Assembly: GCA_013115145.1 (NCBI GenBank)
Contig: JAAPAO010000334.1
Span: 1-38,398, forward strand
Reading direction: 5' to 3'
Origin: Perkinsus chesapeaki ATCC PRA-425
Lineage: Eukaryota > Protista > Perkinsozoa
DNA length: 38,398 nt
The position numbers and the translations under genes were made by a program. This document shows positions 661 to 32,173 of the stretch, piece after piece. The notes beneath the pieces were generated by a model. The model saw only the letters and a program-made list of their open reading frames with translations, was not told the DNA's origin and made no database searches. The stretch's first letter is position 1; each line of letters starts with the position of its first letter.

Positions 661-3600
661 CAGAAGCGAATATACTTAAGAAGGAAGGTAGGATAGCAGA
701 TTTGAGGAATGAGGCACAACCGTTGAAGATGAGACTTCAAATGATAAATGATTCGGTAAGATTAGGAATGACAGTGGAGGGGAGGATCTTTGGTGTTAGA
801 TTGATGTGATGAATCAAGGAATAACTCAGACGAAGTTAAAATTGGCAAATGAAAGAGAAAGGTAAAAATACTGGAACCGAGAATCGAACTCGGGACCTAT
901 CGCGTGTGAGGCGATCGTCATAACCAACTAGACCATTCCAGCTCTGTTTTTCAATTGATATGGAACGCCTGGATCTGCGACCATTGTGGCCTTCCAGATA
1001 CATGGAGGAAGTGTCTCGTAAAGTCGGATTGGATATTCAACTTCGGCAATGCAAGGATAACTTTTTACACGCCCAGGTGAGCGATGCTGTAAGGTGTCGT
1101 TAGTAATGACAGTATTAGAACGAAGCAGTTCGGAAGGATAAGGAATTGTATAGAGCTAAAAGGGATACTAAAAAGGCTATGATTAAGTATGATAGAGCAG
1201 AGGCGGCAATGGAAGCTGTGAAGGTAGTATAATATAATAGAGTATTGTTATAAATCGGAAAAGAAGCCTTTTTGAATATACCTTTTCTTTGATAGACATT
1301 TATATAGAGAAGTACGAAGTTATCTATGTCCTTTTTGATTGAACTTTCATTTGCTAATGCCAGAGATTCCGCTAGGTGGGAGTTGCTAGGGCGGATGGCG
1401 CGTGACTTTTGATTGTGCAGTAGTATGTTACTACTAGACCTTATTGAAGAAGGGGGCGGAGATCAGAATGTGGATTGAGATTTGACGCCTCGCATGCTCA
1501 GGATGAGATGGAAATTGAGCTGAAGGAGAGCGCCAGGTTGGCTGAGGAGGATAAAAAACAGGAATCTTTAATTGAAGAAGTTCAAGCAGAAGTTGATATA
1601 TTCATGGGAGCATTTATGAAACAGGAAAATATGGATCATCATAAAAGTAGATATCCTGGTAAAGATGGATGCTATGTATGCCTGTCAGAGCTTGATTATG
1701 AAGGATTAGTGGCGAGGAGCGGGGACCAACAAAGGGAGCTTCAAGTAGACTATACAGGGGGTTCATGCTCTTCCGAAACTATATTTGTAAAATCGTTGGG
1801 AATTTGGGGGAATATTGACAATATTATATTGTCGAGGTAGTCCGTGCTGATATGTAGTCTAATAACGTCAAGTGGACCGGGTTCCGAAAATAGACATTCC
1901 GTGGGATCGGGAAGAGGGATTGAAATTATGGTGTTAAATGTCCCTTGAATCTCCTCTGGGTTGTAATGTCGATTATATAGGCCCTTGGAAAAGCTGAGGC
2001 GGCTGCCGAGCAAAGAGTACGGTTCTTAGTGAGTCAAAGGGAGAAATTAAATAGAGATACGATGATGGTTGCCAAACTATGCAAACAAACGCTAGGAGAG
2101 GTATGAAAGGTAGATTACGATGGCGAGCGATGATGTAGACGGAGTAGATACAGATGAAGATGTCACAGGAGGCAGACCAGAGGAGAAAACTCGAAGGGTG
2201 TGGGGTGCGACAAAAGGAGTGCCGCTCGGCTTATGAGATAATCAAGAACGAACGCAATAAGTATGGATCTTGAAATCTTAGGGACACTTGCGTTTCCTCA
2301 ACGCAGATATTTGAATTTGATACAAGCTGCTTCGCAAAGGGTGAGTGAGATGCAGGAGAAGTACCGGATATTGAATAGTGAAGCGGATGTGTTACGGGGG
2401 GAGAGCTACTCCAAGGATAAGGCATTGACGAAGACAAAGGCGGCAGCATTAAAGTAGATGCTGTGTTATGCGGTTAATGTTGATGCGGGGTTGGCAGGCA
2501 AAGGGGGATTAGAGACCGGCTGCTGGGAGAGTATAACGAGATGTCGAGTACGGGACATGAATTGAATAATGCGGTGATCCGACGAGACGAATATATTGGA
2601 TCCAATGGGATGATCGATCGTTTAGGTTGAACAAAATGTCGTTGGTATTGATAATCTAAATTATATGATCAACACTCTGGAGAAAAAGTTGGAGGATATT
2701 GGGGAGAGGTGAGTGTGTTGAGAGGTGACGCCAGGGTGGATATCGGAAAGGAAATGTTGATTTAAGGCGTATCATGCTGTTTGCTCGGAGTCAGCAACGG
2801 AGTCATGGAAACTCGGGAACGGAAGTTATTGCGAAAAAATCAATCTAAAAATCCATATCTAGGAAGAGTTGGACGTTGATTTTCTAATCAGATATGAGAA
2901 AGCTTTGGAAGTGCGTAACTTCACGGGAGTACAACTGATAGATAGAAATGATGAGCTATGTGTTCTGTGGGAGAAACATAATATCCTGGAAGGGATGACA
3001 GCTAAGGTAGTAGAAAGGGTTGCTAGTACAGAGACAGAAAAGTATGGGAACTGCTATAGGGGGTAAATCTGTCCATAGATACAGTCCATGGGAACTGCTA
3101 TAGGGGGTAAATCTGTCCATGCATACAGTCCATGGGAACTGCTATAGGGGGTTAATCTGTCCATAGATACAGTCCATGGGAACTGCTATAGGGGGTAAAT
3201 CTGTCCATAGATACAGTCCTTGGGAACTGTTAGTGTCAATCGATTCGACATCACCAGAAACTTAACTTTCGACTGTGAACATCTAGGAGATGTCATGTGA
3301 ACTTGTTTCAGCCCATTTCAGACTCGCTGGGATTCTGGGGTTGGCTAGGGAGCGTGATATGTATATATTTGGACTATACCAGACTCTGCTAACCAGAGTA
3401 ACATGCGTCGTGTTTGATATTTATTGTTTTTTCTGCAGTTGCAAGGCATCCATCGAACGATATCGATTTTGGCGGTAGACTGTTCGTTCCTCTCAGGGGT
3501 CCGTTTCTATGCTCAAGTTATCGGAAGAAATAAAACAAAAATCGCTTGCAGCAAATCAACTTCGGGGAGATGTAGTAGCTAGAGGTGTCAGAAAAAGGGA

Positions 3601-6600
3601 TGACCGTGGGGACTCTTCAGCTCGATGTCATTAAAAACCAGCTACACGCAGCGACACTGCGAGATGGTATAGATCGTGAAGGCGAGCGAGCTTTGCAGTC
3701 TGGTAATAATAAGAAATGCTACGAAGGCACGTTTTATAAATTTAATGTTATTACGGCGCGAAATATTCCGGACAATCGTATCATTGTTGGATTTCATATG
3801 AAGATATTTTTTTCTTACTAACTTGGCCTCTCCAGTGAAATTTGTGAATGGTCATTGCCAGCGCGCAGAGCCTATATTAATACAGAGATGGATCCTGTCG
3901 CATTTTAATCGGCGGATTTCAGTTGGAATTCACCCGTCGAGTGTCGGCTCGGGGCCCCTATCGATAGGCGAGAGAGACGCAGCATCTGTAGTTGATAGGA
4001 TGAAGGTGATGACGAATTTTATGGCGCGCGGTAATTGGCGTCAATAGGAGCAATTGGCCGCGTTGACAGAGAAGTCTGGGACGTTGTCGAAGGAATTGGA
4101 GGATCCGAATAGTCGATTTAGGAAATGGAGGGAGCTCGAGGGAAAGGTGGGGAAAAGATCCAGCGGACCTTCAACACCAGATGCTCATCTAACACCCTTA
4201 TAGAAATGAGCTCCGTGAGGAGAAAAAAGTGTTGCTGAAGCGGAGATATAATAGAAGCTCTTTAACAACTGTTTTTGGGGAACATCAAATAGTCCTTCGG
4301 ATGTTCTTCTATAGCTCTGTTCAACTCCTTCCGATTACCAGGGAGCATTTTATTTTTACTGCACCTTTGCCGCGGTGCAGTTGGGAAGATTGTATTTTCA
4401 GGATCTTGACTTTGAGATTTTAGCCGCTAAAATACGTTTATTGGAGGAGCGACTGAATGATAAGAAGGAAGCTCTACTGGAGAAGGTGCTAATATGAGGG
4501 AAACAAACCAACATTGAAAATGCAGTATACTTCATCTTGGTATTGAGAATGAAATTAATTGAAATTTGTGGAGAGCAAAGCAGTAGGGTGAGAAGGTGTT
4601 TATAAGATCCACCAATTGGAAAAAAGTCCGATGGAATTTTGGTATTGTAATTTAACTCTAATTAGTCGATGCTGTTAAGTGCGTGAGAAATTAGTGTGGT
4701 TCTGTTGACTAGTTCATTAGTGTGGTCTATTAGTGTGGTTCTGTTGACTAGTTCATTAGTGTGGTCTATTAGTGTGGTATTGNNNNNNNNNNNNNNNNNN
4801 NNNNNNNNNNNNNNNNNNNNNNNNNNNNNNNNNNNNNNNNNNNNNNNNNNNNNNNNNNNNNNNNNNNNNNNNNNNNNNNNNGTTGACTAGTTCATTAGTG
4901 TGGTCTATTAGTGTGGTATTGTTGACTAGTTTATTAGTGTGGTCTATTAGTGTGATTCTGTTGACTAGTTTATTAGTGTGGTCTATTAGTGTGGTTCTGT
5001 TGACTAGTTCATTAGTGTGGTCTATTAGTGTGGTTCTGTTGACTAGTTCATTAGTGTGGTCTATTAGTGTGGTATTGTTGACTAGTTCATTAGTGTGGTC
5101 TATTAGTGTGGTATTGTTGACTAGTTTATTAGTGTGGTCTATTAGTGTGGTTCTGTTGACTAGTTGATTAGTGTGGTTGGAAAAAACTCAGGTTCTTGAA
5201 TATTAGTTGTATTATAAAGGAAGAGCAATGGGGCAATACCATCATTTTTAGTTATTAATTTATATACTATATATTTTGTTTTAGGACTTGGTGCTGGAAG
5301 AGTTGGAGCCGCTGTGCATGAAGCTTAAAGCACAAGTTGAAAGTGGCAAAGAGGAGAAACTGGCGTTGATGCAGAAGGTAGTGGTTAATTATGTGGCGCG
5401 TGAGAATGCGCGATGTAGGTTAACTCTCTACAGCAGAATCTTCGTGATTTGACCAAGAGGTTGATGTCGACCGTATCTGAGTTGTCGATGTATCAAGCCA
5501 CGGCGATCGAGGGAGAGGGGGAGAATAGTAGATTACAGGATGTGATTAATGAAGCCTTGGAGAGGCTTAGACAGGGAGAAGTAGTAATCGGGAAGGCACC
5601 GAGCATCACGGCTCGATGGGCTGGGTGCGTGATTCGCTAGATTATGTTGCCGGCGGGGTCGGGAAAGGGTTCCTTGCATGGATGTAGGATTAAGATTTTT
5701 GAAAGCTCAATGGGAAGGTTTAATTTTGCGGATAGGTTTGTAAATAGAATGCATTCCCTCTAAGAATGTTGACACTGACCTTCTGGTGGTCAGGACATCG
5801 CTGTTTCGCTGTTACTTGGTTAAGTTCCGTTGGCTTGCATCAAACAAAGCGGATTTTGGGGGAGATTTTTTGTAAAGTTACTTTCCTCGCCAAAACACTT
5901 GCCAAAGGGAGATTTTAGGCAACGAGCCCGAATGGCTTGCTACTAGGTATTATAAGTCTATGAGATAGTACAGAGCAATATTATATAGAGTATCTATTAT
6001 AATAAGTATTAGTAATCATAATAATAGCACCAATCGTGTAATAGCAATCAATATAATGAGTATTATAATCATTATGATTATAATATAATAATGATGTATC
6101 AGTTTTATATAATATATTCAGCGAATAGGTATCAATAAATGGGGTGTAAGTTATTCCTAGTGCGACCATACAGCGCCAAAATTTTCAATAGAAGATATTT
6201 TTTCCGAAAGGTGTCAGAATAATAGTATTATGATTATTGAACTGTAGTCGCCTTATATTAATGAGGTTATTACTAGCAATAGTCAATCACTCTATCGCAG
6301 CTTCGGGCGAATCAATAACTCTTTAGGATGAAGCGTCTGAAGGTGGTGGCGCCATAGCCCCGTTCCCGGGGGTGTCGGAGGCATTGCTGGATAAAGCGAT
6401 GAGAGCAGAAGGATTGGCGATTGAACAACAGGAAGAGAGGGAAAGAATGAAAAAGGAGAGAGACGAGGCAAATGATCCTAATTTTGTCCGGTGAGAATTT
6501 TGTGGCGCGCGGTCTTTTTGATGAGGTTGGGAATTTGAATATTCCCGGGAAGGGTTTTAAAACTCGGAAAAAACTATTGCAAAAATGATCGTCAGTTTCT

Positions 6601-6911
6601 GGTTGCGATTGTTCATAGCTATTTGGGTGGTTCCCGGATAAGGTAAGTTATTGCTTACTGGTGGCCTCGTGGTGACTCTGGAAAATCGGTGTATGATATT
6701 ATTATCGTGACACTCAATAGATTAGCAGTCGTATTGGGAGTATCTTAGGTCGACGGCTGCTCGTCGGTTACAGCAGTACATTCCGGATGATGGAAGTATT
6801 GGACTGCCGAGAGCCTATGGAGCTCATGCGCCATTTCTGCCATCACAACCGGGAGCAAACATGAGACATATTAGAAAGCCTGTTGAAAAGAAATCAATAA
6901 TCGATTTCTGA
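661..6911 (+). CDS. CCDC146: CCDC146/MBO2-like coiled-coil flagellar protein, multi-exon; 5' end uncertain and probably outside the window
   Basis: Spliced exons give family-typical segments: RNFTGVQLIDRNDELCVLWEK (about 2910-2975), LEDPNSRFRKWRELEGK/DLDFEILAAKIRLLEERLNDKKEALLEK, TKRLMSTVSELSMYQATA, and the C-terminus YIPDDGSIGLPRAYGAHAPFLPSQPGANMRHIRKP...IDF* (TGA 6909-6911). Not every exon was resolved. Confidence 0.8.
869..942 (-). tRNA. tRNA-Val(CAC), antisense within intron 862-997 of the CCDC146-like gene
   Basis: Full cloverleaf: acceptor GCTGGAA/TTCCAGT, anticodon arm ATCGC-CTCACAC-GCGAT, T-arm CCGAG-TTCGATT-CTCGG, discriminator A, then a TTTTT terminator. Confidence 0.95.
3044..3229. 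repeat. Intronic minisatellite, 44-nt unit ATGGGAACTGCTATAGGGGGTAAATCTGTCCATAGATACAGTCC, 4 copies plus a partial
   Basis: Read directly from the sequence. Confidence 0.95.
4690..5178. repeat. Intronic minisatellite, 39-nt unit ATTAGTGTGGTTCTGTTGACTAGTTCATTAGTGTGGTCT, spanning N gap 4783-4881
   Basis: Read directly; it produces the spurious SVVLLTSSLVWSI repeat ORFs. Confidence 0.95.
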
Positions 6912-6946
6912 GTCGTGATGATGATTTAGTGTTGAGTTGATGTGAT

Positions 6947-6971
6947 GCTGGTTCAATTCTTGGCAGGGGCA
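6947..6971 (+). pseudogene. Degenerate tRNA 3' fragment (T-arm plus acceptor 3' strand), intergenic
   Basis: GCTGG-TTCAATT-CTTGG-CAGGGGC-A then CTTT. The register is correct (5+7+1 nt after the T-loop), the B-box is intact and the T-stem is mispaired. Confidence 0.45.
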
Positions 6972-7132
6972 CTTTAATTTATATCTTTTCAATAATTCTT
7001 GGCGACCCTATAGGCTTTGCTCTTTGGAAGGGTGAATATTTCGGCGGTCTACTGTTATGAAAAAATACACACTTTCTGGGTCACCAACAAGTGGTTTTAA
7101 TTAAGGATGGTTTATTCATATTTATTCGAAAA

Positions 7133-7171
7133 GGGAGGTACCTAGGTTCGAACCTGCGTGGTCATTTGCAG
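7133..7171 (-). pseudogene. tRNA-Cys(GCA)-like 3'-half relic, antisense, just upstream of the MYST start codon
   Basis: Reverse complement CTGCAAA-TGACCAC-GCAGG-TTCGAAC-CTAGG-TACCTCC-C has a GCA anticodon loop and resembles eukaryotic tRNA-Cys 3' ends (AGGTGCCCCCT). Confidence 0.55.
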
Positions 7172-7181
7172 TGATTCGGTT

Positions 7182-9981
7182 ATGTCATCTCATCACCCAA
7201 GTTCAGGAGGTCCCATTAGTTCGTCCAGTAGTGCGACACCGCCGACAACAGATCCAGAGTCCAATGACCCAAATAATGCAAATATGCGGTGAGCCGGGAT
7301 CGAACCTGTGCCCTTCAGAATGAAAGTTGAACGTTTTATCTCTGTTCAGGAAACGTCATCGGCATTATCAACTCACACCGGCCGCTGTAGCTGGGCAGGC
7401 GGAGGCTTTGGCGAAGGAGTTTGAACATGCGTTACCGGTAGGAAGGTTTGAAGGGAAAGTTCATCGGAAATTTCATAATTTCCGTAGAAGGGATGACCAT
7501 ATAGTGACTTTGGCACGTTACAATCGATTTATCACTTAGTAGCGCCGGCCATTCTTTTATTACATTCAAGAGTCCAGTAGTTCTTTAGTGGATTATTGAA
7601 CGGATGAAAGATAAGGAAGTTCGAGGAACTTTAGAAAGATATTCTCCGATTTGACCTGTGAGAATTCCGCCTGGGGGGGGAGGAAATAAACTGGTGCGAT
7701 CAAAAGTTGTGTGGGCACGCTTCGCGCGCGTGGGGGTGGAACTGGTGTTTCGTTCAGCGATCATAAAAATGTATTTTAATAATTTCTTTTAGGTTGGTAC
7801 CACTATTAAGTGTCGAATGGTCGAGTTGGACCAATGGCGTCGAGGTACAATAGTGAGCATACGGAGAAGGGAAACCCTACCCGAAGATCATCCATTATTG
7901 AGTGTAAGGGGGTGTAGGTCGCAGGTTCGATTCCCAGTCGGGGTATTTTAACTAGGCGGAAGATCACGATTATTACGTACATTTTCAACGAATGAATCGA
8001 CGACACGATCGGTGGATTAAATGGGAAGATATTAAAGTCGGTGATGGATCAGAGAATGTCAGCGAATCTAATGGAGTTAGCGCTCCAGGTAAATCTTGCT
8101 CATCTTGCTCGTTCTTGCAATTCCTCAACGTGTTCCTTTCAGCATCGGTGTCCTTGCCGGTTGATGATGATTATAGTGATGAATCTGATCATGAGGGAAT
8201 GGGAAATGAGGAGCTTGTCAGCTGGGAGAAGGCCACCCGGGTTAAGCGGATTCAAAAGATATTTTTTCACAAGTTGGTTGCAGCGGCGGAAGTGTGCAAT
8301 TTTGTGGAATATGTTGATTTAGGTACATCTTCGACGCGTGGTATTGGGCACCTTTTCCGGAAGAATATCAAGATTTAGATATTTTATATTTTTGCGAGTT
8401 CTGTCTGAAGTTTTTCGAGTAAGTGAGTTGCTCCTAGTCGGACGAAACTGCTGGCGAATCATCCATGGTTGTGGAAGGGGCTGAGCTTCTTAAGCCTCTT
8501 TAAGGGAGCTGGTGCTACGCGCTTTCCTAGTGGGAGTGGAATCGTATCTCTTCGCCAGCTTTGGGAAGTTTGATAGCTTCGAGGTAAATTTCCTTGGAGT
8601 GTTATAATCCAGAAGTGTCTATCGGTGTGATTGAGGTGCACGCCTAGAGGTGAAAACTTATCACGCTGACTGTCATGAAAGTCTGACTCCCAGTATAGCT
8701 CCATTCGGCTTGGAATGGAGCGACGTACGGAATGTCATCTCACATTTCAGGGATTTACTTTTATGTGTAAAACTTCGAGATTGTTCGATTCTTCTCAGAA
8801 TGTCGTCTAGCCTCACAGGAATGTGTGGGGGGAGGCAGAGAGTGATCCTAATGCAAAATCCTTTTGCTAGAAAATACGTTTCTCGGCCGGAAGGAAGCGG
8901 CCTTCTGGGAGAATCGATTCCTTCGCATTTTTGTTTCTCACTTTAGCACTCGTGAAGGTCTAGTGTGTCACATGAATCGATGCATCCATCGGAGACCTCC
9001 AGGCGATGAGATCTACAAGGACCCAATTCAGCGAATATCTGTCTTCGAAGTTGATGGTTACTTTCAACGAGTTTATTGCGAAAATATATGTTATCTCTCT
9101 AAGTTGTTTTTGGACCATAAAAGATTCGATCGGTTTACTGTCAACGAGTTTTTCTTCTACGTACTGTGCGACTGGGGTCAGAACGGCGAGTATCATTTCC
9201 GAGGATATTTCTCCAAAGACAAAATAGTGACCCATCGTAACCTGTCCTGTATTATGTCCTTACCATGCTTCCAACGAAGAGGCATCGGCAGTTTCCTGAT
9301 TGATTTTTCTTACGAACTTTCGAGGAGAAGCAAGCAAATTGGGTCACCGGAGCGACCTCTGTCGGATCTCGGCAAGCGGACGTATCTTCGTTATTGGCTG
9401 AGCAAGATTCTTGATTTGTTGATGTGCCGCACTGTAAAGGATCCTATTAGTGTCCAAATGCTGTCCGAAATGACGTATATTAAGGAAGATGATATTATAA
9501 TGTAAGTATTGTGTGCTGGCTGTCCCCTTTTTGCTAGCGGCGCTTGTATTTGTGAAAATTATTTTGTCGGGAAGTTTGAACCACTTTTTAAACTAAATCT
9601 GCAGGTTGAGCTCATCTAAAGTGTATTACTCGACATGAGCCTATCATGAGTTGCTAAATCACATTGAAAGTTTTCTTCTTTCCGGGCCAAGGGTTGAATT
9701 TCGTGGCGCAGTGACGGTGATGTATGTCAGGACGTTGACAGAATATAATCTTCTAGTGTATTATAAAGGTAATCATCATATAGCAATCCCTCCATGGAAG
9801 ATAAAGAAGCTTTATAAGCCTCCATCAGAAAACCATTTAAAGTAAGTAGAGATGCAGTCCGTGGGATTCGAACCAGGGACCTTTCGATTACTAGCTGCTA
9901 GTACAGTGCTTCAGGATCCATCCCGAGTTCCTACATTGGGTGCCCTTGCGACTGCCGGCTGCTGAGATGATTTCATCCTGA
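7182..9981 (+). CDS. MYST-family histone acetyltransferase (MOF/Tip60/HAM-like) with N-terminal chromo (Tudor-knot) domain and C2HC zinc finger; about 9 exons
   Basis: Introns 7289-7349, 7438-7792, 7904-7955, about 8089-8142, about 8273-8322, 8419-8946, 9502-9730 and 9842-9914 splice in frame. The product reads VGTTIKCR..., [21 protein letters not shown]...[23 protein letters not shown]...[48 protein letters not shown] and [12 protein letters not shown]. Confidence 0.93.
7285..7340 (-). pseudogene. tRNA-Phe-like 3'-half relic, antisense, filling MYST intron 1
   Basis: Reverse complement ...TTCAA-CTTTCAT-TCTGAAGGGC-ACAGG-TTCGATC-CCGGC-TCACCGC-A. TCTGAAGG, TTCGATCC and GCTCACCGCA match the plant/protist-type tRNA-Phe 3' half as I recall it; the anticodon loop has diverged. 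Confidence 0.65.
7914..7949 (+). pseudogene. tRNA 3' fragment in sense orientation inside the 52-nt MYST intron 7904-7955
   Basis: AGGTC-GCAGG-TTCGATT-CCCAG-TCGGGGT-A followed immediately by a TTTT terminator; T-stem mispaired. Confidence 0.6.
9853..9894 (-). pseudogene. tRNA-Thr(AGT)-like 3'-half relic, antisense, in the last MYST intron (9842-9914)
   Basis: Reverse complement CTAGTAA-TCGAA-AGGTC-CCTGG-TTCGAAT-CCCAC-GGACTGC-A. Anticodon loop, stem, variable loop, T-arm and acceptor strand have canonical lengths; the 5' half is absent. Confidence 0.65.
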
Positions 9982-10249: not shown

Positions 10250-10612
10250 GTTGTTCCTTATAGAGTGTTATATTCACTCTTTAATGGCTGGTTTAGTTGT
10301 TCCTTATAGAGTGTTATATTCACTCTTTAATGGCTGGTTTAGTTGTTCCTTATAGAGTGTTATATCCACTCTTTAATGGCTGGTTTAGTTGTTCCTTATA
10401 GAGTGTTATATTCACTCTTTAATGGCTGGTTTAGTTGTTCNNNNNNNNNNNNNNNNNNNNNNNNNNNNNNNNNNNNNNNNNNNNNNNNNNNNNNNNNNNN
10501 NNNNNNNNNNNNNNNNNNNNNNNNNNNNNNNNNNNNNTGTTATATCCACTCTTTAATGGCTGGTTTAGTTGTTCCTTATAGAGTGTTATATTCACTCTTT
10601 AATGGCTGGTTT
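10250..10612. repeat. Minisatellite, 46-nt unit GTTGTTCCTTATAGAGTGTTATATTCACTCTTTAATGGCTGGTTTA, spanning N gap 10441-10537
   Basis: Read directly; each unit contains an internal inverted repeat AGAGTG-N7-CACTCT; there are no spacers. Confidence 0.95.
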
Positions 10613-11021: not shown

Positions 11022-14000
11022 GCGTTGCTACTACTTGCTACAAGAAGCGTCGTACTGTGTACTGCCAAGAACCGTCTAAATCCAAGCAAAGGATGTTTGC
11101 TTGGGGCTATGGTCTGATGGGTCAGCTCGGCCATGGTGACGGCAAGAACGTGACCATGCCAGTGTAAGAAGCTGGAGAGGATAGATAACTTTTCCGGAGA
11201 TCGGTAGCGCACTCTCATTTCTTAGTGTTAAATTAAAAATATATTAATGCGTAAGATAATATTTATATCACCAACGGTGTATCTAAAAGTCGTTCGGTGG
11301 CTTCCTTAAAACCTTATCGAGGTTCACTGGTCTTGAAAAATTGTATGTGTTCTAGAGCCACTTTAGATTTTGCCTGCTGAGGCTGAAGCACACTCTGCAG
11401 AAAATGAGTAATGACTGAGCCGGAGAATACACATGGTTGAGTATAATGTTGCTTTGACATTGTTTATTTTTCTTCAGACCGGTAGCCGGGATAGATGGGG
11501 ATCCGTGGCGTGTTGGGTGCGGATTGGCAAGCACCGCCGTTATTACAACTGATGGAAAGGTAAGAACGGTGGTGAAATTCTGTAGGGTTTAATTACTTGG
11601 GATCATTCCACGTATTTGACTACTTACAGAATTACTGAACGACCGATAGTTGATAAAATGATTTGTTATAATTGTTTAGTAAGGCTCTGAATTGTAAAAT
11701 AATTTGGTGAAATCTCTATGTAGAAGTGACGGCTTGTTAATTCTTTCAACTTGCCTTTTATTTATTATGCAGTTGTTTGCTCAGCTCTATACGTGGGGGT
11801 GCGGTCAAGATGGTCAGCTGGCCCATGGTACCGATAGCAGGTTTAATGCCTTGGTGCCAGCAAAAGCTGAAGGCCTTCCTGATAATAAAAAGGTTATGTA
11901 CGGACGGGCATGCAGTGAACTTATTAGCCTGACTGATCGCTCCGTGGAACCAAGGTTGAATCCTTTCCGATGATTCACACTCTATAAGCCTTCTTGTTAG
12001 AGCGTTTTAAGGACTTCACGCTTACCGAAACTCCACTCAGTTTTTACGGCTTATTTGCAGCTTAATTGTTCAGAGGCCGAATGTTAATGGTTTATTTGTT
12101 TCAGAGGCATCTCAATGGGAGAGTCTCATTCAGTAGCAGTTATGGAGGATGGTACGGTATGGGCGTGGGGTAAGAATAACTTAGGTCAATGTGGATGTGG
12201 AGTTCATCATAGGTAATAAGAGAAGAGCATTATAACATTACAGTGTATTGTATATCTTTCCTTTAGCATCTTTTCAAATTGATCATTGTGGGGGACCCAC
12301 GAAATTCGATTCGGTTTTGAAAATTATGTTGATTTTCGATTCTGCCACCCCGCCACCTTGACTATGTTGATCTATTTTCAGGTCGAATGATAACCTATTC
12401 ACAACTGGTAGAGAACTACCGAAGCCTTATCCGCCTGGTGAAGTAACTTTACCATCTGGGAAGGTAATAGCGACCATTGAAGTGGAATAGGAATAATAAA
12501 TCTTCAATATGTGCATACAAAAGGAACGCTTCCTATATTTCCTTCGTTCAATAGTTTTCGCAGAAGTTTGATGGAAAAATTTCCGGGTAAATTTGACAGA
12601 ATTTTTCCCAGGAAATTTTTCAATGTATTTTTATGGATGTTTAGGCATGCAATGTGCTTTGTAGTAGAGGTCTTTTGCTAGCGCATTTTTGTTGTAATTC
12701 GGTTTTTCTATCAGAAAGTCTTGAGTACAGCTTCAGGCAGTAACCATACAGTAGCTGTATGTTCTGACGGCTCCCTACTAGTATGGGGTTCTGGTTGGGA
12801 TGGTCAGCTTGGTACTGGCAACAGAAGAGATGTATTCGTACCAATTCAACCGGACCAAGGGGAAATGACCGATGAAAATAATGTAATAAGAACGGATCGG
12901 TTAATAGTGATGAGCGCTGGTCAATGATGTAGGGAGAGGAATGGTTGATAGAGATAAGCATGTCGTATAGTAACCATTAGTTTCGGGCTCAAAGTCCGAA
13001 CAGTGCCATCGAAAATCAGGCGGCGATTTGTCAGGGTTGGTGAAGGATTACCTCTCGGTGGCTAAACGACTGGTTCGTCTATCGCCGAAAAAAATCAGTT
13101 TTATGAGCTTCGCTGGGTTTGTAGCTACTTGTGTCAGGCCATCGGTGTCTCATGCGGACAGGACTTCTCAGCAGTGGTGACGTCAGACGGAGCATTATAC
13201 ACATTTGGATCGAATCAATATGGCCAATTGGGAGTTGGTGATGGATGTAGTATGAAAGGGAAATTGTTGGATGTATAGTCAGTTCTTGGGCAATTTGCTG
13301 AGTCGTCAAATTGGAGGGTTGGCTATTTGTGAAGTGAAATGAATTTCGTGACGAAAAGTGCTAACGCATTGTAGACTGTTATATACACTATTTATTAACG
13401 TACAGTACATATTGTGTGGGACTTCCACGCGCCGGTTTTTTGTCAATAATTATGAAACGGTTGATCGATTCACATGCACTTTTACACCCTGTGTTTTAGT
13501 ACTGTACTTTTCAACCTTGTATTATATAGATTGGTAATAGACACTGACAGTTTAATATATAGGATTGGATATATAAAATGAACCTACTGTGAATTACAGC
13601 TCGTCTCGTTTCTTCAAACACGTTTAATATAAAAGTGCTGAGAGGGGAATAAGCAGTTCGTTTTCTGGTTCCTAAGTTACAGGGATCCTCCCAGTGAAGT
13701 TAGATAATTCATGTGGGATAGGAGATTAGTGACATCTCCTCTGTTTTATTATAGTGACATCTCCTCTGTTTTATTATAGTGACATCTCCTCTGTTTTATT
13801 ATAGTGACATCTCCTCTGTTTTATTATAGTGACATCTCCTCTGTTTTATTATAGTGACATCTCCTCTGTTTTATTATAGTGACATCNNNNNNNNNNNNNN
13901 NNNNNNNNNNNNNNNNNNNNNNNNNNNNNNNNNNNNNNNNNNNNNNNNNNNNNNNNNNNNNNNNNNNNNNNNNNNNNNNNNCCTCTGTTTTATTATAGTG

Positions 14001-17706: not shown

Positions 17707-18454
17707 ATGTTATTCAATAAAGCTATGGGTTTGATAGCAGCAGCGGCCACTGTGGCATCCTTCGCTTACTGGTTCAATTTCCTCCTCAACGATCCTTTCC
17801 ATCTTGGTTGGAAGACCATGGATTCACGTCACGTCACATTTGGTCATTGCCAACAGTTCGGCTTATCGGTCGCGTTGAGCGACGTTCTGGCGTTGCTGCC
17901 CTTCTTTGCTAGTCACAGTTTGCTGGCACGGAGGAGTGTTAAGAAGGCTATTGGGGTGTTTGATGAACCTTATGAACAATCGGTTTACTTTGGCGTCAGC
18001 TCACTAACATTGGCGATGTCGGTTTACTTGTGGTGTCCTGTAAGCGACTGTTCTTCCTTTAACATGACTGATGTGAGCCTATTAAAAGGCGTTCTGTGGT
18101 TTGGGTTATCTATAATAGGCATGGTCCTCACTACCGCATCCAGCGCGACAGTCATTTCCTTACTGGGAAAGAAACGACAGAAGAAGCTTGTGAAGACGTT
18201 CCCGTACAGTATCGTGAGGCATCCAGGTCAACTTGGATTTCTGCTACTATTCTGGTCAATCCCAGCATACACTCCGAACCACTTGTTCCTGGGGCTGTTA
18301 TGAACTGTATTCCCTATCGGCGGTCGTGTTGCTCGAGGAGGCTGATCTTCGAGATCCTATTGTTGGTTTCGGCAAGGAGTACGATAAATACGCTGAAGAA
18401 GTGAATGCATTCATTCCAAGTCGCCGTGCATTAGGGTGTGTTTTCTGCCGTTAG
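17707..18454 (+). pseudogene. Nurim/MddA-like (ICMT-superfamily) membrane methyltransferase, intronless, disrupted by TGA at 18301 and a frameshift near 18313
   Basis: Motifs FFASHSLLARRSVKK, YEQSVY, WCPV and FPYSIVRHP, with the C-terminal LLEEADL...GKEYDKYAEEVNAFIP in another frame; colinear with the intact neighbour. Confidence 0.75.
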
Positions 18455-18973
18455 TTCTCTTGTACGTACATTTGCCTCTCAAACCCTCCTATTGTGTTAT
18501 GAAGTGCCAATACGATTGTCTCTTGGTGATGCATTTATACCTTGGCATTTGATGCCTGGCATCGAGTTGTCTGCGAAATGGCCGAGTTCGGGTCTTGTTT
18601 CTCTTCACTGACCCATATTCCTTTCCTGAGGAGGTAAGAATGATCTTGCCACTTTGATCTCCGAAGATGATATCTTTCTCACTGTCTTCCGTAATCCGAG
18701 CTCTCCCTCCCAATTGGCCTATATCTAAAAAGGTAATTATTCGTACGATATATGAATATATATATTTTGATAGATCAATAATACCAATATCAGTAGATTC
18801 ACACTAATGCCTAATTTACAATATACAGTAGATACTTGTTATTATAATTGGTTCCTGGTTGCGATTTGAATTCAGCGCTGATGCTGGGCACATTTCCAAT
18901 TTCGACGACCGGCCTTCTATGATGAGCTGATATTGTTTTTCGCTTGCCATTTTACAACTAGTGTTTTTCAGTA

Positions 18974-19768
18974 ATGGCTTTCAACTTTACAGCGTATCTC
19001 CTGTCTCGTGTTGCCTTCGCTGGTACCATATTGGTATTCCCCTACTGGCTTAACTTCATGCTTAACGATCCCCTTCAATTGGGCTGGAACACTATAGACT
19101 CTGGCGATGTGTTGCCTGAAGGAACATGTGTTATTTTCGATCCTCATTCTCTGTACAACAATCTGCTAGCCTTCTTCATATTCGCTGTGCCTCATAGTGT
19201 TCTTGCAAGGCAAAGTGTGAAGAAGATTTTGCGCATCGCCGACAAGCCGTATGAAAGGCCGCTCTTTGCCTTCATCAGCCCTGTAACATTCTTCCTAACA
19301 TTTTACTATTGGCAACCGATAAGCAACTGTAGCAGATTTGATATCAGCACCTTATCATGTGGTGCCATCATGGTATCAACTACGATAAGTTTGATAGCAG
19401 TTATATACATCCTGGGCGTAATGTTTACACTACCTGACCACATATTTGGGACTGAGCGCTACAAGCTTAAAAGTGGGGAAACGCAGAAGGGAAAGTTGAT
19501 AACTACCTTTCCGTACAACCTGGTGCGCCATCCAGCCGGCGCTGGATTCCTTTGGCTGTTCTGGAGTTTTCCTTCTTATAATGTGAATCACATTATAATT
19601 AGTAGTATGTGGACACTCTATGTTGTTCCTGCTACGCTGTTACTTGAAGAAAACAGTCTGCGAGGCCCCAATGGTGAATTTGGGCCCGCTTATGATCGAT
19701 ACGCTGAAGATGTGGCTGCTTTTTTACCTGGTAAATGTGTTTTTAGAGCTTTTTTTGGAAAGAAGTGA
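18974..19768 (+). CDS. Nurim/MddA-like membrane methyltransferase, intronless, 264 aa
   Basis: FAVPHSVLARQSVKK, YERPLF, YWQPI, FPYNLVRHP and LEE...G..YDRYAEDVAAFLP match the nurim/methanethiol S-methyltransferase pattern; multiple transmembrane segments. Confidence 0.8.
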   Translation: MAFNFTAYLLSRVAFAGTILVFPYWLNFMLNDPLQLGWNTIDSGDVLPEGTCVIFDPHSLYNNLLAFFIFAVPHSVLARQSVKKILRIADKPYERPLFAFISPVTFFLTFYYWQPISNCSRFDISTLSCGAIMVSTTISLIAVIYILGVMFTLPDHIFGTERYKLKSGETQKGKLITTFPYNLVRHPAGAGFLWLFWSFPSYNVNHIIISSMWTLYVVPATLLLEENSLRGPNGEFGPAYDRYAEDVAAFLPGKCVFRAFFGKK

Positions 19769-23560: not shown

Positions 23561-25600
23561 GCGGCTGTCTAAAGTTAGGCCAGATCGAAAAGTTTCGAGT
23601 CACTGTTAATGACTCATTAATAATGAGCCACTAGACCGACAATGTAACCTTGCTTTGGTGAACTCAAAAGCAACAGGGTTTTACAGATGGAAACACTGCG
23701 AGTCAAGTCTTATGACTCAACTCAGCAACGGTCAACGATCAAGAGTTGTATTAGCGCAACAGGTTGAACACCATGCGCCGCGGGCCGCGGCCCGCGGCTG
23801 TAGCTGCGTCCAAAGGGTGGATTGCTGGCGAACAAATGTATGGTAAACGGTACAATACGAACGCGACAAGCCACAAACTACGAAGTGCACAGCCGTGGCC
23901 ACAGTTGCAGGATATACAAACTGCTTCTTGGATGAAGAATCCCGCCTCTACAGAACTGTCATTCCAGTGTTTTAGTGTCAACTGCAATTACCAACGGGCC
24001 ATCCTGTAACCTCTTAAACTTTTAAGAACTTTTTCTGTGCCCGTCGTTCTTTAAGTACTTCGGAAGACCATCATGGACCTCGATGCTGTGGGAAGTCCGG
24101 CCTCACCACTATGTATTGCTTTGTCACATCTTTCACGACATCCTCGGACTTCTGACCTTCACCTGCAGCGGCTATCATGCCATATTTTGCTATATAGTCG
24201 AATGTCCTGGCTCGGCTCCCTCCCCAACAGCCGCTGAAGACCGGGTCCAAGCGTGTGTTCCTTTGGAGAGGCGCTCACTAATTGCCCTGCTGTGAACCTG
24301 AACTTCAGGTCTAATACCAGTTTTAGTCCCGCATGCAACTTCCATGGCACCTCGAGAAGGACACACACGCTGGCGCAGTTGCACCCAGTTATCAAATGAT
24401 CTTAGTTGGCTAGTGGACGATGTGTACAGAATGGTAATCGGGTAGCACCTCTGGCATCGACCCTGGTCAACGGGCGGATCAACGGCGCCCCTTGTAGACG
24501 AGTTAAGATCTGATCCGTAATCGCCTGGAGAGTCGTTTGCCGTGTAATTTCCACTCTTTTCTGGGATGCTGATTGACATGGGCAGTTAGCAGGCTATAGG
24601 TGGAACTGACTAGGACGTGCCGGAAGCGGTGGAGACAGCTTTCTGGTAAACCCTTCTTGCGTTAAGGCTGCGAGCTCATCAACTTTCAGCGCGTATTATA
24701 CTCATGAGTCATAGGCTATGAAGATAAGAGCAGTCGCAACATTCTGCAGTATTCTTCTAGCGAGGTGAGGCGGTCTTAAGACTGTGAATCCATCAAGAGC
24801 TCGTTATTCGAAGCGGCCTTGTGACCCCATTTCAGTGAGTTTCTGCCCTAGTGCGTTGTACACTAGCATCATGGCCTGGTAACACAGGTATATAATGTGG
24901 TGGAGACGTGAGTGTCTATGCCACGAAAAGTTAGACATCGTCAAAGTATAGCATCGTCAATAAAAGTAACAATATTCTCATCAACATCCTCGAGCTCAAT
25001 CGAAACAACTGAGCTGCCGTTTGCAGTGCCGCAGCTGCCTTGCTTCAGCGAAGAGTCCGTCAAGCACCAAGCCGTCGCCTGTCCATATTTGCTCTCTTCC
25101 AGTGCCTGATGGTGAGAATTACTCTATTCGTGTTTTGTAACTTACAAAAAGTGTGGTATGTCCTTTACAATCCTGGATTCTCTGCAGAATCAAATTTCCA
25201 GAGTCATCCAAACATAAGGGGACAGCTGCCGACACAATCTCAGGATCCACCGAATTCCGCAAAACTCGGAGAGAATTTTCCTCGGGACAATTCTCATCTC
25301 GGGGAGGCGCGCGAAAGCTGAAAAGTAAATCACTTATGGTAGTGTCAGGCAGCAATGAGGGAAAACACTCCACAATAAAATCTAACTTAGTTCGCCTCAA
25401 ACAACGCCTGAACAGTCACAGCATTTCCGCTACTAGAGGACCCTAACGGCTCTCAGGCTGGACCCTGTTACGCCGCGACATGTTAGTATTTACAAACATT
25501 TTTTTACGCTGACGCCTAAAATGTATAAACTCTATTATCTTGATGTCTACTCAAGTACTGTGCACGAAACTACTACTGCCAGTTACTCTTAACGCACTTT

Positions 25601-25760
25601 TATCGACACTGTTCACTCTGTGTTACCCTTGACACACTGTTATCGACACTGTTCACTCTGTGTTACCCTTGACACACTGTTACCGACACTGTTTACTCTG
25701 TGTTACCCTTGACACACTGTTATCGACACTGTTCGCTCTGTGTTACCCTTAACACACTAT
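25601..25760. repeat. Minisatellite, 40-nt unit TATCGACACTGTTCACTCTGTGTTACCCTTGACACACTGT, 4 copies
   Basis: Read directly from the sequence. Confidence 0.95.
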
Positions 25761-27836
25761 TACTGCTCCCTGTGTGCGACTCTACTTTGTTTACTGCCAG
25801 CGTTTAAAACAGTAAGCAGTGATTTTTTTAACGAAAGACAAAGTGCCTAAATCCTTTCAAGGAGTTCCCTTACCGATCGCCAACAGATTTGATACATAGC
25901 TCCTGTAGTGGAGGTATATATGTCTCTGTCACTGAATTGAATGTGAACTCGTGAACATATCCTTCTTGATCGCAACTTCCAGATCTACCGACTGCTGCTG
26001 CCATCCATCTGAGAGCGTTCAATAGGATGTAATTATCTCTAACTTACTTAAATCTTCTCAAACCGCGAGACAAACTTTGGATAATTCTCGAACGAATTAA
26101 CGTATGGCTACGCACCTCGAATGTCCACCGCTGCTGAGGAACCCCACACAGATCGGTTCTCCTCTTGATGATTTCCTCACATACATTATTTTTTCGTCAT
26201 TCCACGTCTTCCGGCTGCGCTCGTCATAACCACTGGGACATTGCACCCGAGTGGCCTACAGTTAAAGTCGAAGTTCGTCATCTTTAGTGAGAACTCTACC
26301 TCCTTTATTTCTATAAAGCGATAAACCCATCCTTGTGGTGACACGGATATGCAGATAGCTGTGAGATCTTCACTTGGGACATATTTAACATCATCAAGAT
26401 GCAATACTTTGAATCCGAGTAGGTGGGTCCAACCCTGACGATCAGTGCTGTATAACTAGTACACGATGTGCCGTAGGTGGCCCTAGCCAGATGAGCGCCG
26501 TATTATATCGACCTGCTTATATGTTTGGAGTATTACGACATGCGATTCGTATGTCATATTGTATCTTCTCTTGGCTCAAGAATTCCGTTGCCCGCCTCAG
26601 TGGGGAGAAAATTTTTCGTCTGGTTCTGTACATAATGGGAAGGCGCGAACGTCTATTATTGATTTTCGAGCTACTGTGGATATACTGTATCTTTCCGTAC
26701 ATTTCATACGAAAAATGTGCCCCCGGTATGTCAGAGCCACCCGTCACCGACTCGAAGGGCCCCACCTGATCACCGCACCAATCTGTTCCAACATTGATCC
26801 TATGCTTCATCCCAGATCCTGAAGCATCATTGGCTTGGCCGATGCAAGCCGGGAAGTCTCTGATGTATCGCCTGTTCTTGCCTGTGGGTTGATGCATGTT
26901 AACTTCTCTAAGCATCACACTTGCCTTTCTCCAATGCTTGGGCGAGGACGTCCCTCGACAGGGCATGAATGCTTCCTTTGTGTAGTGATGGGAGAGTTCT
27001 GATGAACCTTTGTAGTCTCCACTGATGGTCGATAACAGTGCCGAGCTGTCTGTTGAAGTCTATCGCTAGAAACCTTGATGGAATCGTCCTCGATGTTGCT
27101 CCTCATCGATAAGTGCTAACCTTATGTCTTCTCGCCGTTTGCACTGTTCTGGTAGAAGCTCCCGAAGTTCGTCCAAGTCACTTGGGACTTTCTTAATACC
27201 GATGCGCAGATCAGTTTGGGAGCCACATAGCTCTGTGTGAGTGCCAATTTAACTGTCATAAACGCTACTGGCCGACCTCGTCGCACGATGAGATATATTC
27301 GCTCTTCTGTCGTCTCAACTGCGGTCTTCTTCGATGCCACAGATTTCCAGTGCAGTGTGAATCCTCTAGCCGTGCTATTCACAGAAGTATCTTGCAGTTG
27401 ACGTCCTATCGGGACTAATCAACCTGGTTGGTGCTGCATTCGCAGCGAGCTTGCTATGTCTGCCGAGATATTATAGATTTTCTCTACAGATTGTCTGCTA
27501 GTCACCTTCACACCGAAATATGCAGTAGTATAGTCTATACTACTTGTCATAGCAGCGAAATCCAATAATGTAGAACTTAGTCACTACAGAAAAGGTTCGA
27601 ACTAAGTCGTTCGAATGCCCACTCTCCATCTGCGCCAACCTGTGCGTCCAGGGCGCGCCGTCAGTCGGGTTTTCGGGTCAGAGCGTGTACCAAAACACAC
27701 TTTAGGCCCTAAAGCTTATGTAAAGCCTTGTCCGGACAGGTTAGCCTGGTGCTCATCACAAATTAAGCTCTCAGAGAGGATTCCATGGATAACATGTTTT
27801 AAAGAAAAGCGTCGAGCTATCTCGAATTTTTGTAGT

Positions 27837-30554
27837 CTATCCTTTTCTATAGAGCTTGGAAGGATACATAATTGAGAAAGTACTTAGGATTGGGGTTAAA
27901 TTGACTAGGGCATCATCACTGCTAGTGACAGAGTTGATCTTGATTCCCTACCTGCAAAGATGATAGAATCGTTTGACTTAACAAATTCATTCCTCAGAAC
28001 ATACTCAACATTATTGATACCATCGCTCCGCCATATCATATCGCCTGACCTAACCTGCTGATCGAATTCGAACACTACAAACTGAGCTCATCATATACCC
28101 GTTGTAGCCTCTCCCACATAGGCTTGTCATCAGCTGGCCTTCTACGGGGTGTATGGTCACTATCATGCAGACACAAGAACTTGCCATGGCCCTTTGGCGG
28201 CCGGAGTATCTTTAAAGGACTTTGCAATCACAACTAATTTATCCGACTCTATACCCTTGGAGAGGTATTCTGAGATCTCTATGAAGAGCACTCGACATAG
28301 ACTGACAATTTAATAGTTCTCCCTCTATAAGGAGATTGACGTTACAACGATTCAGCTGGATGAGCCAAGGATTAGTTACGGGCAATGCGCGGTTCGATTA
28401 CTTCCACGCTGCCGGGTTGAGTGAGGCAAAAAGGTTCACAGCCGCCCGCAAGTAATTGATTATGGCGGAGCCTCCAGTATCTGATTTGCTCGATACGCAG
28501 GTTCGACCCTCGCTTCTGTCATTTTACAAATCGTCGTCCTCTCCTCCCCAACCCCAATATTCATTGGAGAAACCATTTATCTTTTCCCAGTGTTCGGGTG
28601 TCATTGCAACTGTGCCACCCACGTTTCCAGGATATGGTACACTCCAACCCCAGCACTCAATTTCACTGCTAAGCTGGGTCGGTGTTGTACAGGAACCGAA
28701 ATCAACTCCTGAGAAATGAAGATTCCTCGACGGTAGGCTTCCATGCGACGAGGCTAGAACTTGGAAGTAGTCTTTTTGCCATTGCGGTTGGGTGGGACTT
28801 GACAATACTTGGTTATGAACCACACTAAGCTACAAACTTTTCAAGGAGAATGCTCTATGAATATCAAGAGTTATTGGTTCATACTGTATCAGTTGGAGTG
28901 ACGTGTTGTTAGTGCTCGCGTTGGATGGATCGATTCAACTCACCGGACATAGGTAAATTGTCGACATCTTGCATGACTATGCAGTCGGGTGGGCCATCGC
29001 CCATACTACGCATGACTTCTCGGAATCTGAGCTACAGTCCTCAAAAAATATCAAACATATTTATGCAAGCTGGAATGGTCTAGTTGGTTATGACGATCGC
29101 CTCACACGCGATAGGTCCCGAGTTCGATTCTCGGTTCCAGTATTTGTATCCATCGTAGCCTTGCCTCACCCGACATTAAACAGCCATCCTCGGTTAAATA
29201 ACTGATTATCAAACTGTTCAATGAGGAATACGTGGAACTCTTGATTCCGCTTGTTCTCAACATTCAATTCTCTGACGAAGTCGGCTAGGTGCCGCTCGAA
29301 CTTCTGGTAATGACTTTCCCGGTCTCGATATCTACAGCAAACAGGCGAGTCGGTGAATAGGTGAAGCTTTATTGAGAATTAGAATAAAGCGACGCACGCT
29401 GTACTCATGATTTTTAACTCCGTATTATGGACCGATTAAAGCGATTGCTAGAAGCCTAAGAACTGCCGATGCCTTGCACGTCACTAAAAAATTGTAACAG
29501 CACGCATGCGTTGCCGCGTCAGCTGGTAATACCAGTCAGGGACTTTGTTTAGATCGAAAAGTGCAAGAAGCAACTCACGGGATAACAATGGCAATCCGTT
29601 TGTCTCGAGTGGCGGGCACTGTGACTTCGGTGGAATGAATTTGCCGATAGTCGATGCAGCCAGCACATTCACAGTGCAATCTCGAGATACCGCACCACCT
29701 TCACAGAGAGAAGCGGTATCCTAATTTGGATTGATAATAGCTGTCCAACCCGCTAGCGCTGCAGCAGGGAAACTGGCCATCAGGATTGCACTCAGCCTTC
29801 TGCTGGGACCCGTCATCTGATGGCCAGCCGACGCCACATCTGCCAGCAAGAGTTAGCACAGTGCATTTCTTTATGGTTTTACTGGAAATCATCTCTCCAA
29901 GGTTTAGAGGATGCTTTCACCGATGTTGGTTCGACATGCGCCTTTGTAAGCTCGTTAGACTTCGTAACAGCGGTAAGCTTGGTCGTAGGTTTGTCTGCTC
30001 AATCGCTATCCATTTACGGGTTTTACCGTCTTACCTATGACATAATGTTTTCGGTTATCAACCAAGTTCTGTATTCGTTTCAGCTCCTTCATCAGTCCAT
30101 CAAGCCTTTGCTCGAGTTTTTCAACTTCTTCACTCTGGAAACGAAATCTATCATCTGAATTGCCATTTCGCTCCACCTTATAAGATGCCATCCGTATCCC
30201 TTCATCCTTCACAAGCAGTTCCATAACCATATTCCGTATCATTGCTTTGTCACTGTCGGATGCTATCAGTAGGCCTGATCACCGCAAGCATCCCGAAACG
30301 ACGTGTTTTTCAAGTACCAGAGTTGTGGCGTGCTCCGTTTGATATCTGGCCGAATATTTCGCTCAGGATGTATATGGATTTCTCGTGGCGTTCAAGTTGC
30401 CTCAATTTCGGTATGTAGAGAGCCTACTAGCAGGTTCGTATTTCTGTTTCCTTTAGTGTCCGACCTCGAATAGGTAAAGTCCAGCAATGCACGAAAATGC
30501 GAGCAAACCAATAAGAAAGACCAGCAGATATGATGGTGGCCGCGAAACTGCCAT
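27837..30554 (-). CDS. GT7 family beta-1,4-galactosyltransferase-like type II membrane protein with coiled-coil stem and hevein/CBM18-like Cys module; multi-exon, 3' end uncertain
   Basis: ATG at 30554 and a signal anchor (YLLVFLIGLLAFSCIAGLYLF). Spliced exons give RIAIVIPYRDRE, IEQFDNQLFNRGWLFNVG, CIVMQDVDNLP (DxD), NVGGTVAM...INGFSNEYWGWGGEDDDLY, ILRPPKGHGKF and WRSDGINNVEY. Confidence 0.9.
28481..28525 (+). pseudogene. tRNA-Leu/Ser-like (long variable arm) 3'-half relic with terminator, forming essentially the whole 47-nt GT7 intron in antisense
   Basis: CTGATTTGCTCGATAC-GCAGG-TTCGACC-CTCGC-TTCTGTC-A-TTTT; the 3' end TTCTGTCA resembles tRNA-Leu ends. Confidence 0.7.
29069..29142 (+). tRNA. 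tRNA-Val(CAC), antisense within an intron of the GT7 gene; identical to the copy at 869-942
   Basis: Full cloverleaf, 74/74 nt identical to the first copy by eye; weaker terminator (TTTGT). Confidence 0.95.
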
Positions 30555-32141: not shown

Positions 32142-32173
32142 GGAACAAGAAACTGTCTGAAGCGGCAGGCGAT

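Follow-up and report, generated by a model that had tools for sequence, protein, structure and literature searches.

Introns of protein-coding genes can harbour transfer RNA (tRNA) genes, for example in Caenorhabditis (PMC3342880). Here we describe eight tRNA-derived elements, two intact tRNA-Val genes and six relics that comprise only tRNA 3′ parts, in a complete contig of 38,398 bp (the window) from Perkinsus chesapeaki, a protist that parasitizes shellfish and is related to dinoflagellates and apicomplexans. Both intact genes and four of the six relics lie within introns of 47–143 nt, and at three intronic relics all specified bases of the B box are conserved in Perkinsus olseni, while its surroundings have changed. 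The nested genes of Caenorhabditis are likewise independent RNA polymerase III (Pol III) genes within introns of RNA polymerase II (Pol II) genes, and the two Val genes of the window are ordinary examples of this arrangement. Unlike those cases, most nested genes in the window are 3′ tails that fill minimal introns, overlap splice signals and contain a B box that appears to be under selection.

Lone B boxes are a second known phenomenon. They comprise the extra-TFIIIC (ETC) sites of budding yeast, the 'chromosome-organising clamp' (COC) sites of fission yeast and the TFIIIC-only sites of mammals. These sites are few and mostly intergenic, and a tRNA ancestry is not visible in them. The Perkinsus relics share with them a B-box consensus that lacks a working tRNA gene and is conserved between species, implying protein-DNA binding. 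They differ in being intronic and in having an explicit tRNA ancestry. In mammals, intron 1 of Polr3e contains a conserved antisense MIR, which is a Pol III-type short interspersed element (SINE) (PMC5358760). It resembles the relics as a conserved Pol III-type element in antisense orientation within an intron, and it is reported to affect the host gene via the Pol III machinery. The MIR is a SINE at a single locus that is occupied by Pol III, whereas in Perkinsus there are many tRNA-gene relics.

Recognizable non-intron sequence that makes up a whole spliceosomal intron and supplies its splice sites is also known from introners and introner-like elements, among them those of dinoflagellates and Amoebophrya (PMC11282704; PMC7789003). 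Those elements, however, form families of mobile copies that are nearly identical, carry target-site duplications and show recent, still polymorphic insertion, whereas the relics are heterogeneous, old, conserved in position and derived from cellular tRNA genes. With tRNA pseudogenes and tRNA-derived SINEs the relics share decayed tRNA-like sequence in which the internal promoter is kept; they differ in having no common body or tail and in retaining only the 3′ third, in register with the terminator, in non-coding DNA that is intronic in four of six cases. Full-text literature searches brought up no account of tRNA-gene relics within introns of Perkinsus, nor one in which introns arise from tRNA genes, in line with the original prediction for this contig, whose author knew of none; a 2024 review of transposon-derived introns (PMC11282704) mentions neither.

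Both ARAGORN and Rfam identify a pair of intact tRNA-Val(CAC) genes with identical tRNA sequence (64.7 bits each), and these are the only elements of the window that reach the gathering threshold of the Rfam tRNA model (RF00005) or obtain an anticodon call from ARAGORN. The first (869–942, minus strand) is antisense to its host, a gene for a CFAP58/CCDC146-like flagellar coiled-coil protein, and is followed on its own strand by TTTTT. It lies in a 136-nt intron (862–997, plus strand), which is supported by threading of the GenBank protein KAF4662851.1, by the reading frames and by a position shared with P. olseni. The donor of this intron, GTAAAAA, reads as the tRNA terminator complement and lies 7 nt from the tRNA 3′ end. 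The second copy (29069–29142, plus strand) is followed by only TTT and is antisense to a GT7 (beta-1,4-galactosyltransferase-like) gene. Its intron of 143 nt (29027–29169, minus strand) has boundaries inferred by hand from frames and domain match: the Glyco_transf_7N match stops at the end of the upstream exon, and the NVG/F junction is in frame. Here, the tRNA 3′ end is 27 nt from the donor.

The B-box pattern GGTTCRANNC was found at six further places in the window, with G53 at 6951 (plus), 7153 (minus), 7305 (minus), 7925 (plus), 9873 (minus) and 28501 (plus). Only 1.9 occurrences are expected, and none of 100 shuffles reached the observed count. At each of these places the 7-nt T-loop is followed by 5+7+1 bases, corresponding to T-stem, acceptor strand and discriminator, and usually by a T-run. 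Position 73 is A in five of the six relics (p = 0.008). The four bases after the discriminator hold at least three T, again in five of six (p = 1e-5), and read exactly TTTT in three, where the original prediction had counted a TTTT terminator in two. Read in this register, none of the six relics has a CCA. A B box, the 5+7+1 bases in register and a Pol III T-run without CCA characterize the relics as derived from tRNA genes, as had been proposed. They are strongly decayed: only 2–4 of the 5 T-stem pairs are left, and the 5′ halves are absent. A search against RF00005 at E ≤ 10 gave no match for any of the six, and they do not qualify as functional tRNA genes.

Since Rfam returned no relic matches, we used the register analysis and a purpose-built profile instead. 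The profile was built from 14 relic 3′ parts of the window and of P. olseni and was searched unfiltered. It finds exactly eight elements in the window, namely the six relics and the two Val genes, the latter being outside the training set, and thereby independently reproduces the predicted number. Weak motif matches at 4319, 8783, 27602 and 30711 were rejected, as neither the register nor the profile supports them. The six acceptor 3′ strands are all different, and outside the B box the relics have a mean pairwise identity of 0.46. Their origin therefore lies in different source genes and not in one repeat family, and the near-identical copies that define introners are not found. Different isotypes had been predicted for the relics; the sequence bears this out only as far as six different acceptor 3′ strands. 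Relics in introns 1, 3 and 8 of a MYST histone acetyltransferase gene match the B-box consensus GGTTCGANNCC exactly and belong to no functional Pol III gene. Departures from this consensus are seen in the GT7 relic and the relic at 7153 at the last base (T for C), and in the relic at 6951 at two bases. The combination of B box, 5+7+1 bases and T-run provides a simple marker for cataloguing relic introns.

Three of the intronic relics lie in the MYST gene (7182–9978, plus strand). Intron 1 (7289–7349, 61 nt) contains an antisense relic (7281–7314, minus strand). Its donor, GTGAGC, falls within the acceptor-strand register of the relic, as predicted, and the nominal tRNA 3′ end is 4 nt inside the exon. 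Intron 3 (7904–7955, 52 nt) contains a relic in sense orientation (7916–7949), in which AGGTC, the B box and the 5+7+1 bases are followed by TTTT 6 nt ahead of the acceptor. Intron 8 (9842–9914, 73 nt) contains an antisense relic (9849–9882, minus strand), and here 11 nt separate the donor from the tRNA 3′ end. The fourth intronic relic makes up nearly all of a 47-nt intron of the GT7 gene (28481–28527, minus strand); it is antisense (28492–28525, plus strand), and the donor GTAAAA of this intron is the complement of the relic TTTT plus AC. The other two relics are intergenic. One of them (6942–6975, plus strand) has a weak B box, GGTTCAATTC, and lies about 30 nt past the stop of the CFAP58-like gene, in intergenic DNA or the 3′ untranslated region. 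The other (7129–7162, minus strand) has a palindromic B-box core and the 5+7+1 register followed by TTTT, and lies about 20–30 nt upstream of the MYST ATG in the intergenic spacer. The interval 7133–7171 had been taken for an intron. It lies in the spacer, 29 nt upstream of the MYST ATG, and the corresponding GenBank 'intron' is an artefact of a gene fusion described below.

Removal of the relic-bearing GT..AG intervals restores a conserved frame or domain, as judged by threading, domains, a homolog and the B4GALT1 match, and we regard these intervals as spliceosomal introns. Threading of KAF4662851.1 (1090 aa) on the contig DNA yields 26 annotated introns, to which the remainder of about 32 modelled introns was added by hand. 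Introns 862–997, 7289–7349 and 7904–7955 agree with the threaded protein. The Tudor-knot domain is continuous across 7904–7955, and domain continuity was seen across MYST introns 3, 5 and 6, including zf-MYST. For intron 9842–9914, one homolog aligns across the junction, and the P. olseni models support it. For intron 28481–28527, the Glyco_transf_7C and B4GALT1 matches end exactly at GWGGEDDDL, the end of the exon, and the frame meets a stop inside GTAAAA; short pieces of GT7 exons gave no Pfam or PDB matches.

At 862, 7289, 9842 and 28527 the donor is 7, −4 (an overlap), 11 and 6 nt away from the tRNA 3′ end, and the claim that in four introns the donor lies at, or within 11 nt of, the tRNA 3′ end holds. 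GTAAAA was found as donor only at 862 and 28527 among the about 32 modelled introns, and in both cases it is the terminator complement, exactly as had been noticed. A general rule that the donor is always the terminator complement was rejected, since the Val intron of P. olseni uses GTAGTA. As to orientation, six of the eight elements are antisense, as originally counted. A specific antisense bias does not follow from this (p = 0.29 within the window): five of the six intronic elements are antisense and one relic is sense, and the excess stays non-significant when the elements found only in P. olseni are added by hand count.

For comparison with relatives, an exon query from the MYST gene together with a representative search gave only a Logan open reading frame (L001) from a third, more divergent relative, and a cluster look-up of this reading frame led to KAF4662851.1. 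A search with this fused protein then yielded two P. olseni models at loci L002 and L003; no P. marinus ortholog came up. Both loci are syntenic with the window (CFAP58-like, MYST, RCC1, PEMT), and their exons are about 73–77% identical to it at the DNA level. In both, a tRNA-Val(CAC) gene lies antisense in the intron orthologous to 862–997, which is 114 nt long in P. olseni. The relics of MYST introns 1, 3 and 8 are present in both loci in unchanged orientation. Every intron position that was compared is common to the two species, including those of MYST introns 1, 3 and 8 and of 862–997, where the original prediction had suggested a check for absence in sister species. The Val gene and the three MYST relics are therefore old and do not represent recent gains.

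The conservation of these relics is specific to the motif. At the three orthologous MYST relics P. chesapeaki and P. olseni agree in 27 of 27 specified B-box bases, while the unspecified (N) positions are changed in 2 of 6. The flanks of the relics are 43–74% identical, and the ordinary short introns of the MYST gene, at 48–62%, are effectively scrambled. At a per-site identity of 65% the chance of 27 identical bases out of 27 is about 9e-6. In intron 1 the P. olseni ortholog has the same relic with an intact B box. In intron 3 the T-stem of the relic is fully paired in P. olseni and is unpaired here through CpG-to-CpA changes, with the B box unchanged. In intron 8 the 34-nt core is about 91–94% identical by eye. 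Such motif-specific conservation was found at the three intronic relics, and not at the intergenic relics or in intron 8 of L001, which also begins with a homologous decayed relic. In a separate observation on the T-stem, the 5′ strand CCGG of P. olseni (L002 22351 and 22749) reads CAGG in P. chesapeaki (7305 and 7925); CpG-to-CpA changes at these two relics may hint at methylation-driven decay.

We consider it probable that the elements are intron-nested tRNA genes that decayed in place and retained their B boxes, likely as docking sites of the TFIIIC type. Along this line, tRNA genes would occupy non-coding DNA of a compact genome, including short introns. An intact gene would be packed with its 3′ end and T-run against the splice site, a 5′ flank of 40–55 nt filling the remainder, so that splice site, T-run, 74-nt tRNA and 5′ flank would add up to introns of about 114–143 nt. 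After death of the gene, deletions would shrink the intron toward 41–54 nt, the 5′ half and the T-stem pairing being lost, and the last 30–35 nt would survive with variable loop, B box, acceptor 3′ strand, discriminator and T-run. The sizes fit such a decay series: introns with intact genes measure 136 and 143 nt (114 nt in P. olseni), introns with relics 47–73 nt, and most ordinary short introns 41–54 nt.

Two causes may have kept the remnant. Its terminal bases could have been co-opted as splice signals, as GTAAAA donors where the relic is antisense and as a T-rich tract before the acceptor where it is sense. In addition, the B box could be under purifying selection. Only its specified bases are invariant, and the relics are conserved in P. 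olseni both in sense (intron 3) and in antisense (introns 1 and 8) orientation to the host; the constraint is thus most likely on double-stranded DNA. It would then reflect docking of the Pol III factor TFIIIC, or of a comparable B-box binder, within Pol II genes. A wider version of this idea is that Perkinsus keeps fossil tRNA genes throughout its genome in Pol II introns as TFIIIC-type docking sites that couple the Pol III machinery to gene bodies (for insulation, pausing or chromatin organization), with terminators recycled as splice signals and some lineage-specific introns perhaps seeded by tRNAs. We put this forward tentatively, and rate it below even chances.

Several observations weigh against decay in place with retained docking sites. 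The test of B-box conservation comprises three orthologous relic pairs, all from one gene. In L001, 2 of the 9 specified B-box bases of intron 8 are changed, so that the constraint is not universal. The intergenic relic at 6951 cannot be aligned with P. olseni, and the B box of that at 7153 is not kept there. A pseudo-tRNA of P. olseni has no counterpart in P. chesapeaki. A search for GT7 orthologs with a 99-aa exon gave no match, and the comparison with relatives therefore covers only elements outside the GT7 gene. RNA contigs, from two tiny listed runs of which one has data and neither of which includes the GT7 region, confirm only the relic-free 54-nt and 229-nt introns of the MYST gene and cover no relic intron. 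The involvement of TFIIIC at the relic B boxes is purely something that we infer. Finally, what looks like selection on the B box could be produced by gene conversion with intact tRNA genes as donors.

The last point belongs to the best surviving alternative, according to which the relics are functionless tRNA pseudogenes in decay, with B boxes left intact by slow decay, gene conversion or ascertainment. Such pseudogenes are common in eukaryotes, and turnover is indeed seen, in the decayed B box of L001, the non-conserved intergenic relics and the element restricted to P. olseni. Ascertainment, however, was in P. chesapeaki only, yet the P. olseni orthologs keep 9 of 9 specified bases while N positions and flanks have changed and neighbouring introns of the same gene are scrambled. 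Conversion tracts should homogenize the flanks as well, and the flanks differ. We think this explanation unlikely. If it holds, the window documents ordinary decay of tRNA pseudogenes in a compact genome.

The original prediction went further and suggested that antisense tRNA-gene copies may create or host introns. Spelled out as a route of intron gain, tRNA genes, or 3′ copies of them at the DNA or cDNA level, would have entered exons, mostly in antisense, and brought or completed splice sites. That relics fill entire minimal introns and that two donors are terminator complements speaks for such a route. The distribution of introns in four outgroup taxa adds to this. In Cardiosporidium, Pylaiella, Ectocarpus and Gonium no intron corresponds to relic introns 3 and 8 of the MYST gene or to the Val intron 862–997, whereas the relic-free MYST intron 6 is common to the apicomplexan Cardiosporidium in position and phase, and two CFAP58 introns appear common to Ectocarpus by eye in a weak coiled-coil alignment. 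The nearest non-Perkinsus homologs of the MYST protein are intronless, which fits the idea but makes them uninformative. With four taxa this mapping is far from significant; it is compatible with an ancient, lineage-specific gain of introns in Perkinsus, and suggestive only.

Nothing in the window shows a gain of an intron by a tRNA gene. All tested elements are older than the split of P. chesapeaki and P. olseni, and no presence/absence difference of an intron was seen among the positions compared in the two species. Recent insertion with target-site duplication, as in introners, was not found: P. olseni shares the positions, and inspection of the boundaries by eye revealed no target-site duplications or shared termini. 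Relics also occur between genes and in sense orientation, the P. olseni Val intron has a donor that differs from the terminator complement, and the outgroup sample is small. Moreover, the intron at 756–799 is 44 nt long here and has no relic, while its P. olseni counterpart measures 410 nt and carries the antisense pseudo-tRNA mentioned above (L002 15950–16030, L003 15720–15800), in which the acceptor stem pairs as GCCGGGC/GCCCGGC and the middle is scrambled. This intron occurs with and without a tRNA element, and intron and element are therefore separable, whichever way the change went, as its direction is not polarized. An intron position present in a relative that lacks tRNA-like sequence had itself been named in the original prediction as evidence against its proposal. 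What stands of that proposal is that introns host antisense tRNA genes and relics; as a route of intron gain it now appears doubtful, and we give it a low probability.

A role at the RNA level, as a splicing signal for minimal introns in the pre-mRNA or through transcription of the relics to small tRNA-like RNAs, could account for the way in which relics occupy introns and lend bases to splice sites. Immediately ahead of the acceptor of intron 3 is the T-run with AAC after it, in the place expected of a branch or pyrimidine signal. Against this, the motif is conserved in sense as well as in antisense to the host transcript, and most short introns of the same genes do without it. The unpaired T-stems, the missing A box and the lack of an Rfam tRNA score make a structured RNA product unlikely, and we hold a role of this kind to be quite improbable. 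Least probable is a tRNA-derived SINE or other mobile family targeting introns, which the SINE-like B-box heads and the 19 nt common to the P. olseni relics of introns 1 and 8 around the B box might suggest: those 19 nt are generic tRNA consensus (AGGTC plus T-arm), the ends are those of tRNA genes (discriminator, then T-run) with no common body or tail, the positions are ancient and orthologous, and the idea was rejected on the sequence heterogeneity described above.

Decay in place with retention of the B box has consequences in two directions. If the B boxes are bound, Perkinsus would hold a large natural set of TFIIIC-type sites with visible tRNA-gene origin inside protein-coding genes. 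It would then be possible to test directly how 'extra TFIIIC' sites arose and how Pol III factors interact with splicing and with transcription by Pol II. For intron evolution, the window exemplifies foreign functional sequence compacted into minimal introns, with a Pol III terminator that doubles as 5′ splice site. Within one contig it offers a complete range of stages between an intact gene and a minimal relic, together with a conserved relic in sense orientation, intergenic relics that are not conserved and one case in which intron and tRNA element are separable.

The gene models at this locus required correction. KAF4662851.1 (660–9502) wrongly joins the CFAP58/CCDC146-like gene to the MYST acetyltransferase gene, as judged by Pfam. 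The fusion runs via a spurious 681-nt 'intron' (6491–7171) and skips the final CFAP58-like exon, in which the true stop is at 6909–6911; read by eye, the end of this exon resembles the conserved C-terminus of the Ectocarpus and Gonium homologs. A spacer of 270 nt separates the two genes. The GenBank model also ends at 9502, so that the last two MYST exons are missing. We completed the MYST model by hand to nine exons that read in frame from the ATG at 7182 to the stop at 9978 and encode 464 aa with the Pfam domains Tudor-knot, zf-MYST and MOZ_SAS. Besides introns 1, 3 and 8 it has introns at 7438–7792, 8089–8142, 8273–8322, 8419–8946 and 9502–9730 (introns 2, 4, 5, 6 and 7). The P. olseni gene models carry the same fusion of CFAP58-like and MYST genes, and the merging of two genes in the GenBank entry is flagged here as an annotation problem.

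In P. olseni, additional relics of tRNA 3′ parts that have a B box, A73 and a T-run were found at L002 3101, 4531, 5631 and 29099 and at L003 3616, 6042 and 28416. They lie in genes neighbouring the locus, an unnamed minus-strand gene and the RCC1-like gene; in P. chesapeaki, the site corresponding to the RCC1 relic is close to an assembly gap. In L001, MYST intron 7 is about 43 nt long (1563–1605), compared with 229 nt here, and intron 8 exceeds 330 nt, compared with 73 nt, and is filled with short GAAATTTCC-like repeats.

The window contains three assembly gaps, none of which touches a tRNA element and each of which is within a tandem-repeat array in non-coding DNA. The gap at 4783–4881 is in an intron of the CFAP58-like gene, and the exons on either side of it are also consecutive in P. 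olseni. The gap at 10441–10537 comes after a 46-nt array in the spacer between MYST and RCC1, and that at 13887–13981 is in non-coding DNA between conserved RCC1-like blocks. In the first and the third case the same repeat unit, of 39 nt and 25 nt, respectively, is present on both sides. Minisatellite arrays with units of 24–47 nt are frequent in introns and spacers of the window. Those at 4690–5177, 10250–10440 and 13727–14051 are accompanied by others at 1–301, 3044–3229, 25582–25762 and 37257–37360.

The first part of the window (1–8000) shows a strong positive GC skew (0.2–0.35) on the plus strand across the CFAP58-like gene, which is consistent with the purine-rich coding strand of a coiled-coil protein. 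At 32060–32161 there is a hairpin or palindrome that scores 36 bits against the plant MIR837 model on both strands, well short of the gathering score of 117; it probably represents an inverted repeat rather than a microRNA. Two neighbouring open reading frames on the plus strand (17596–19768) each have a weak match to PEMT/ICMT-type methyltransferases and may represent a tandem pair.

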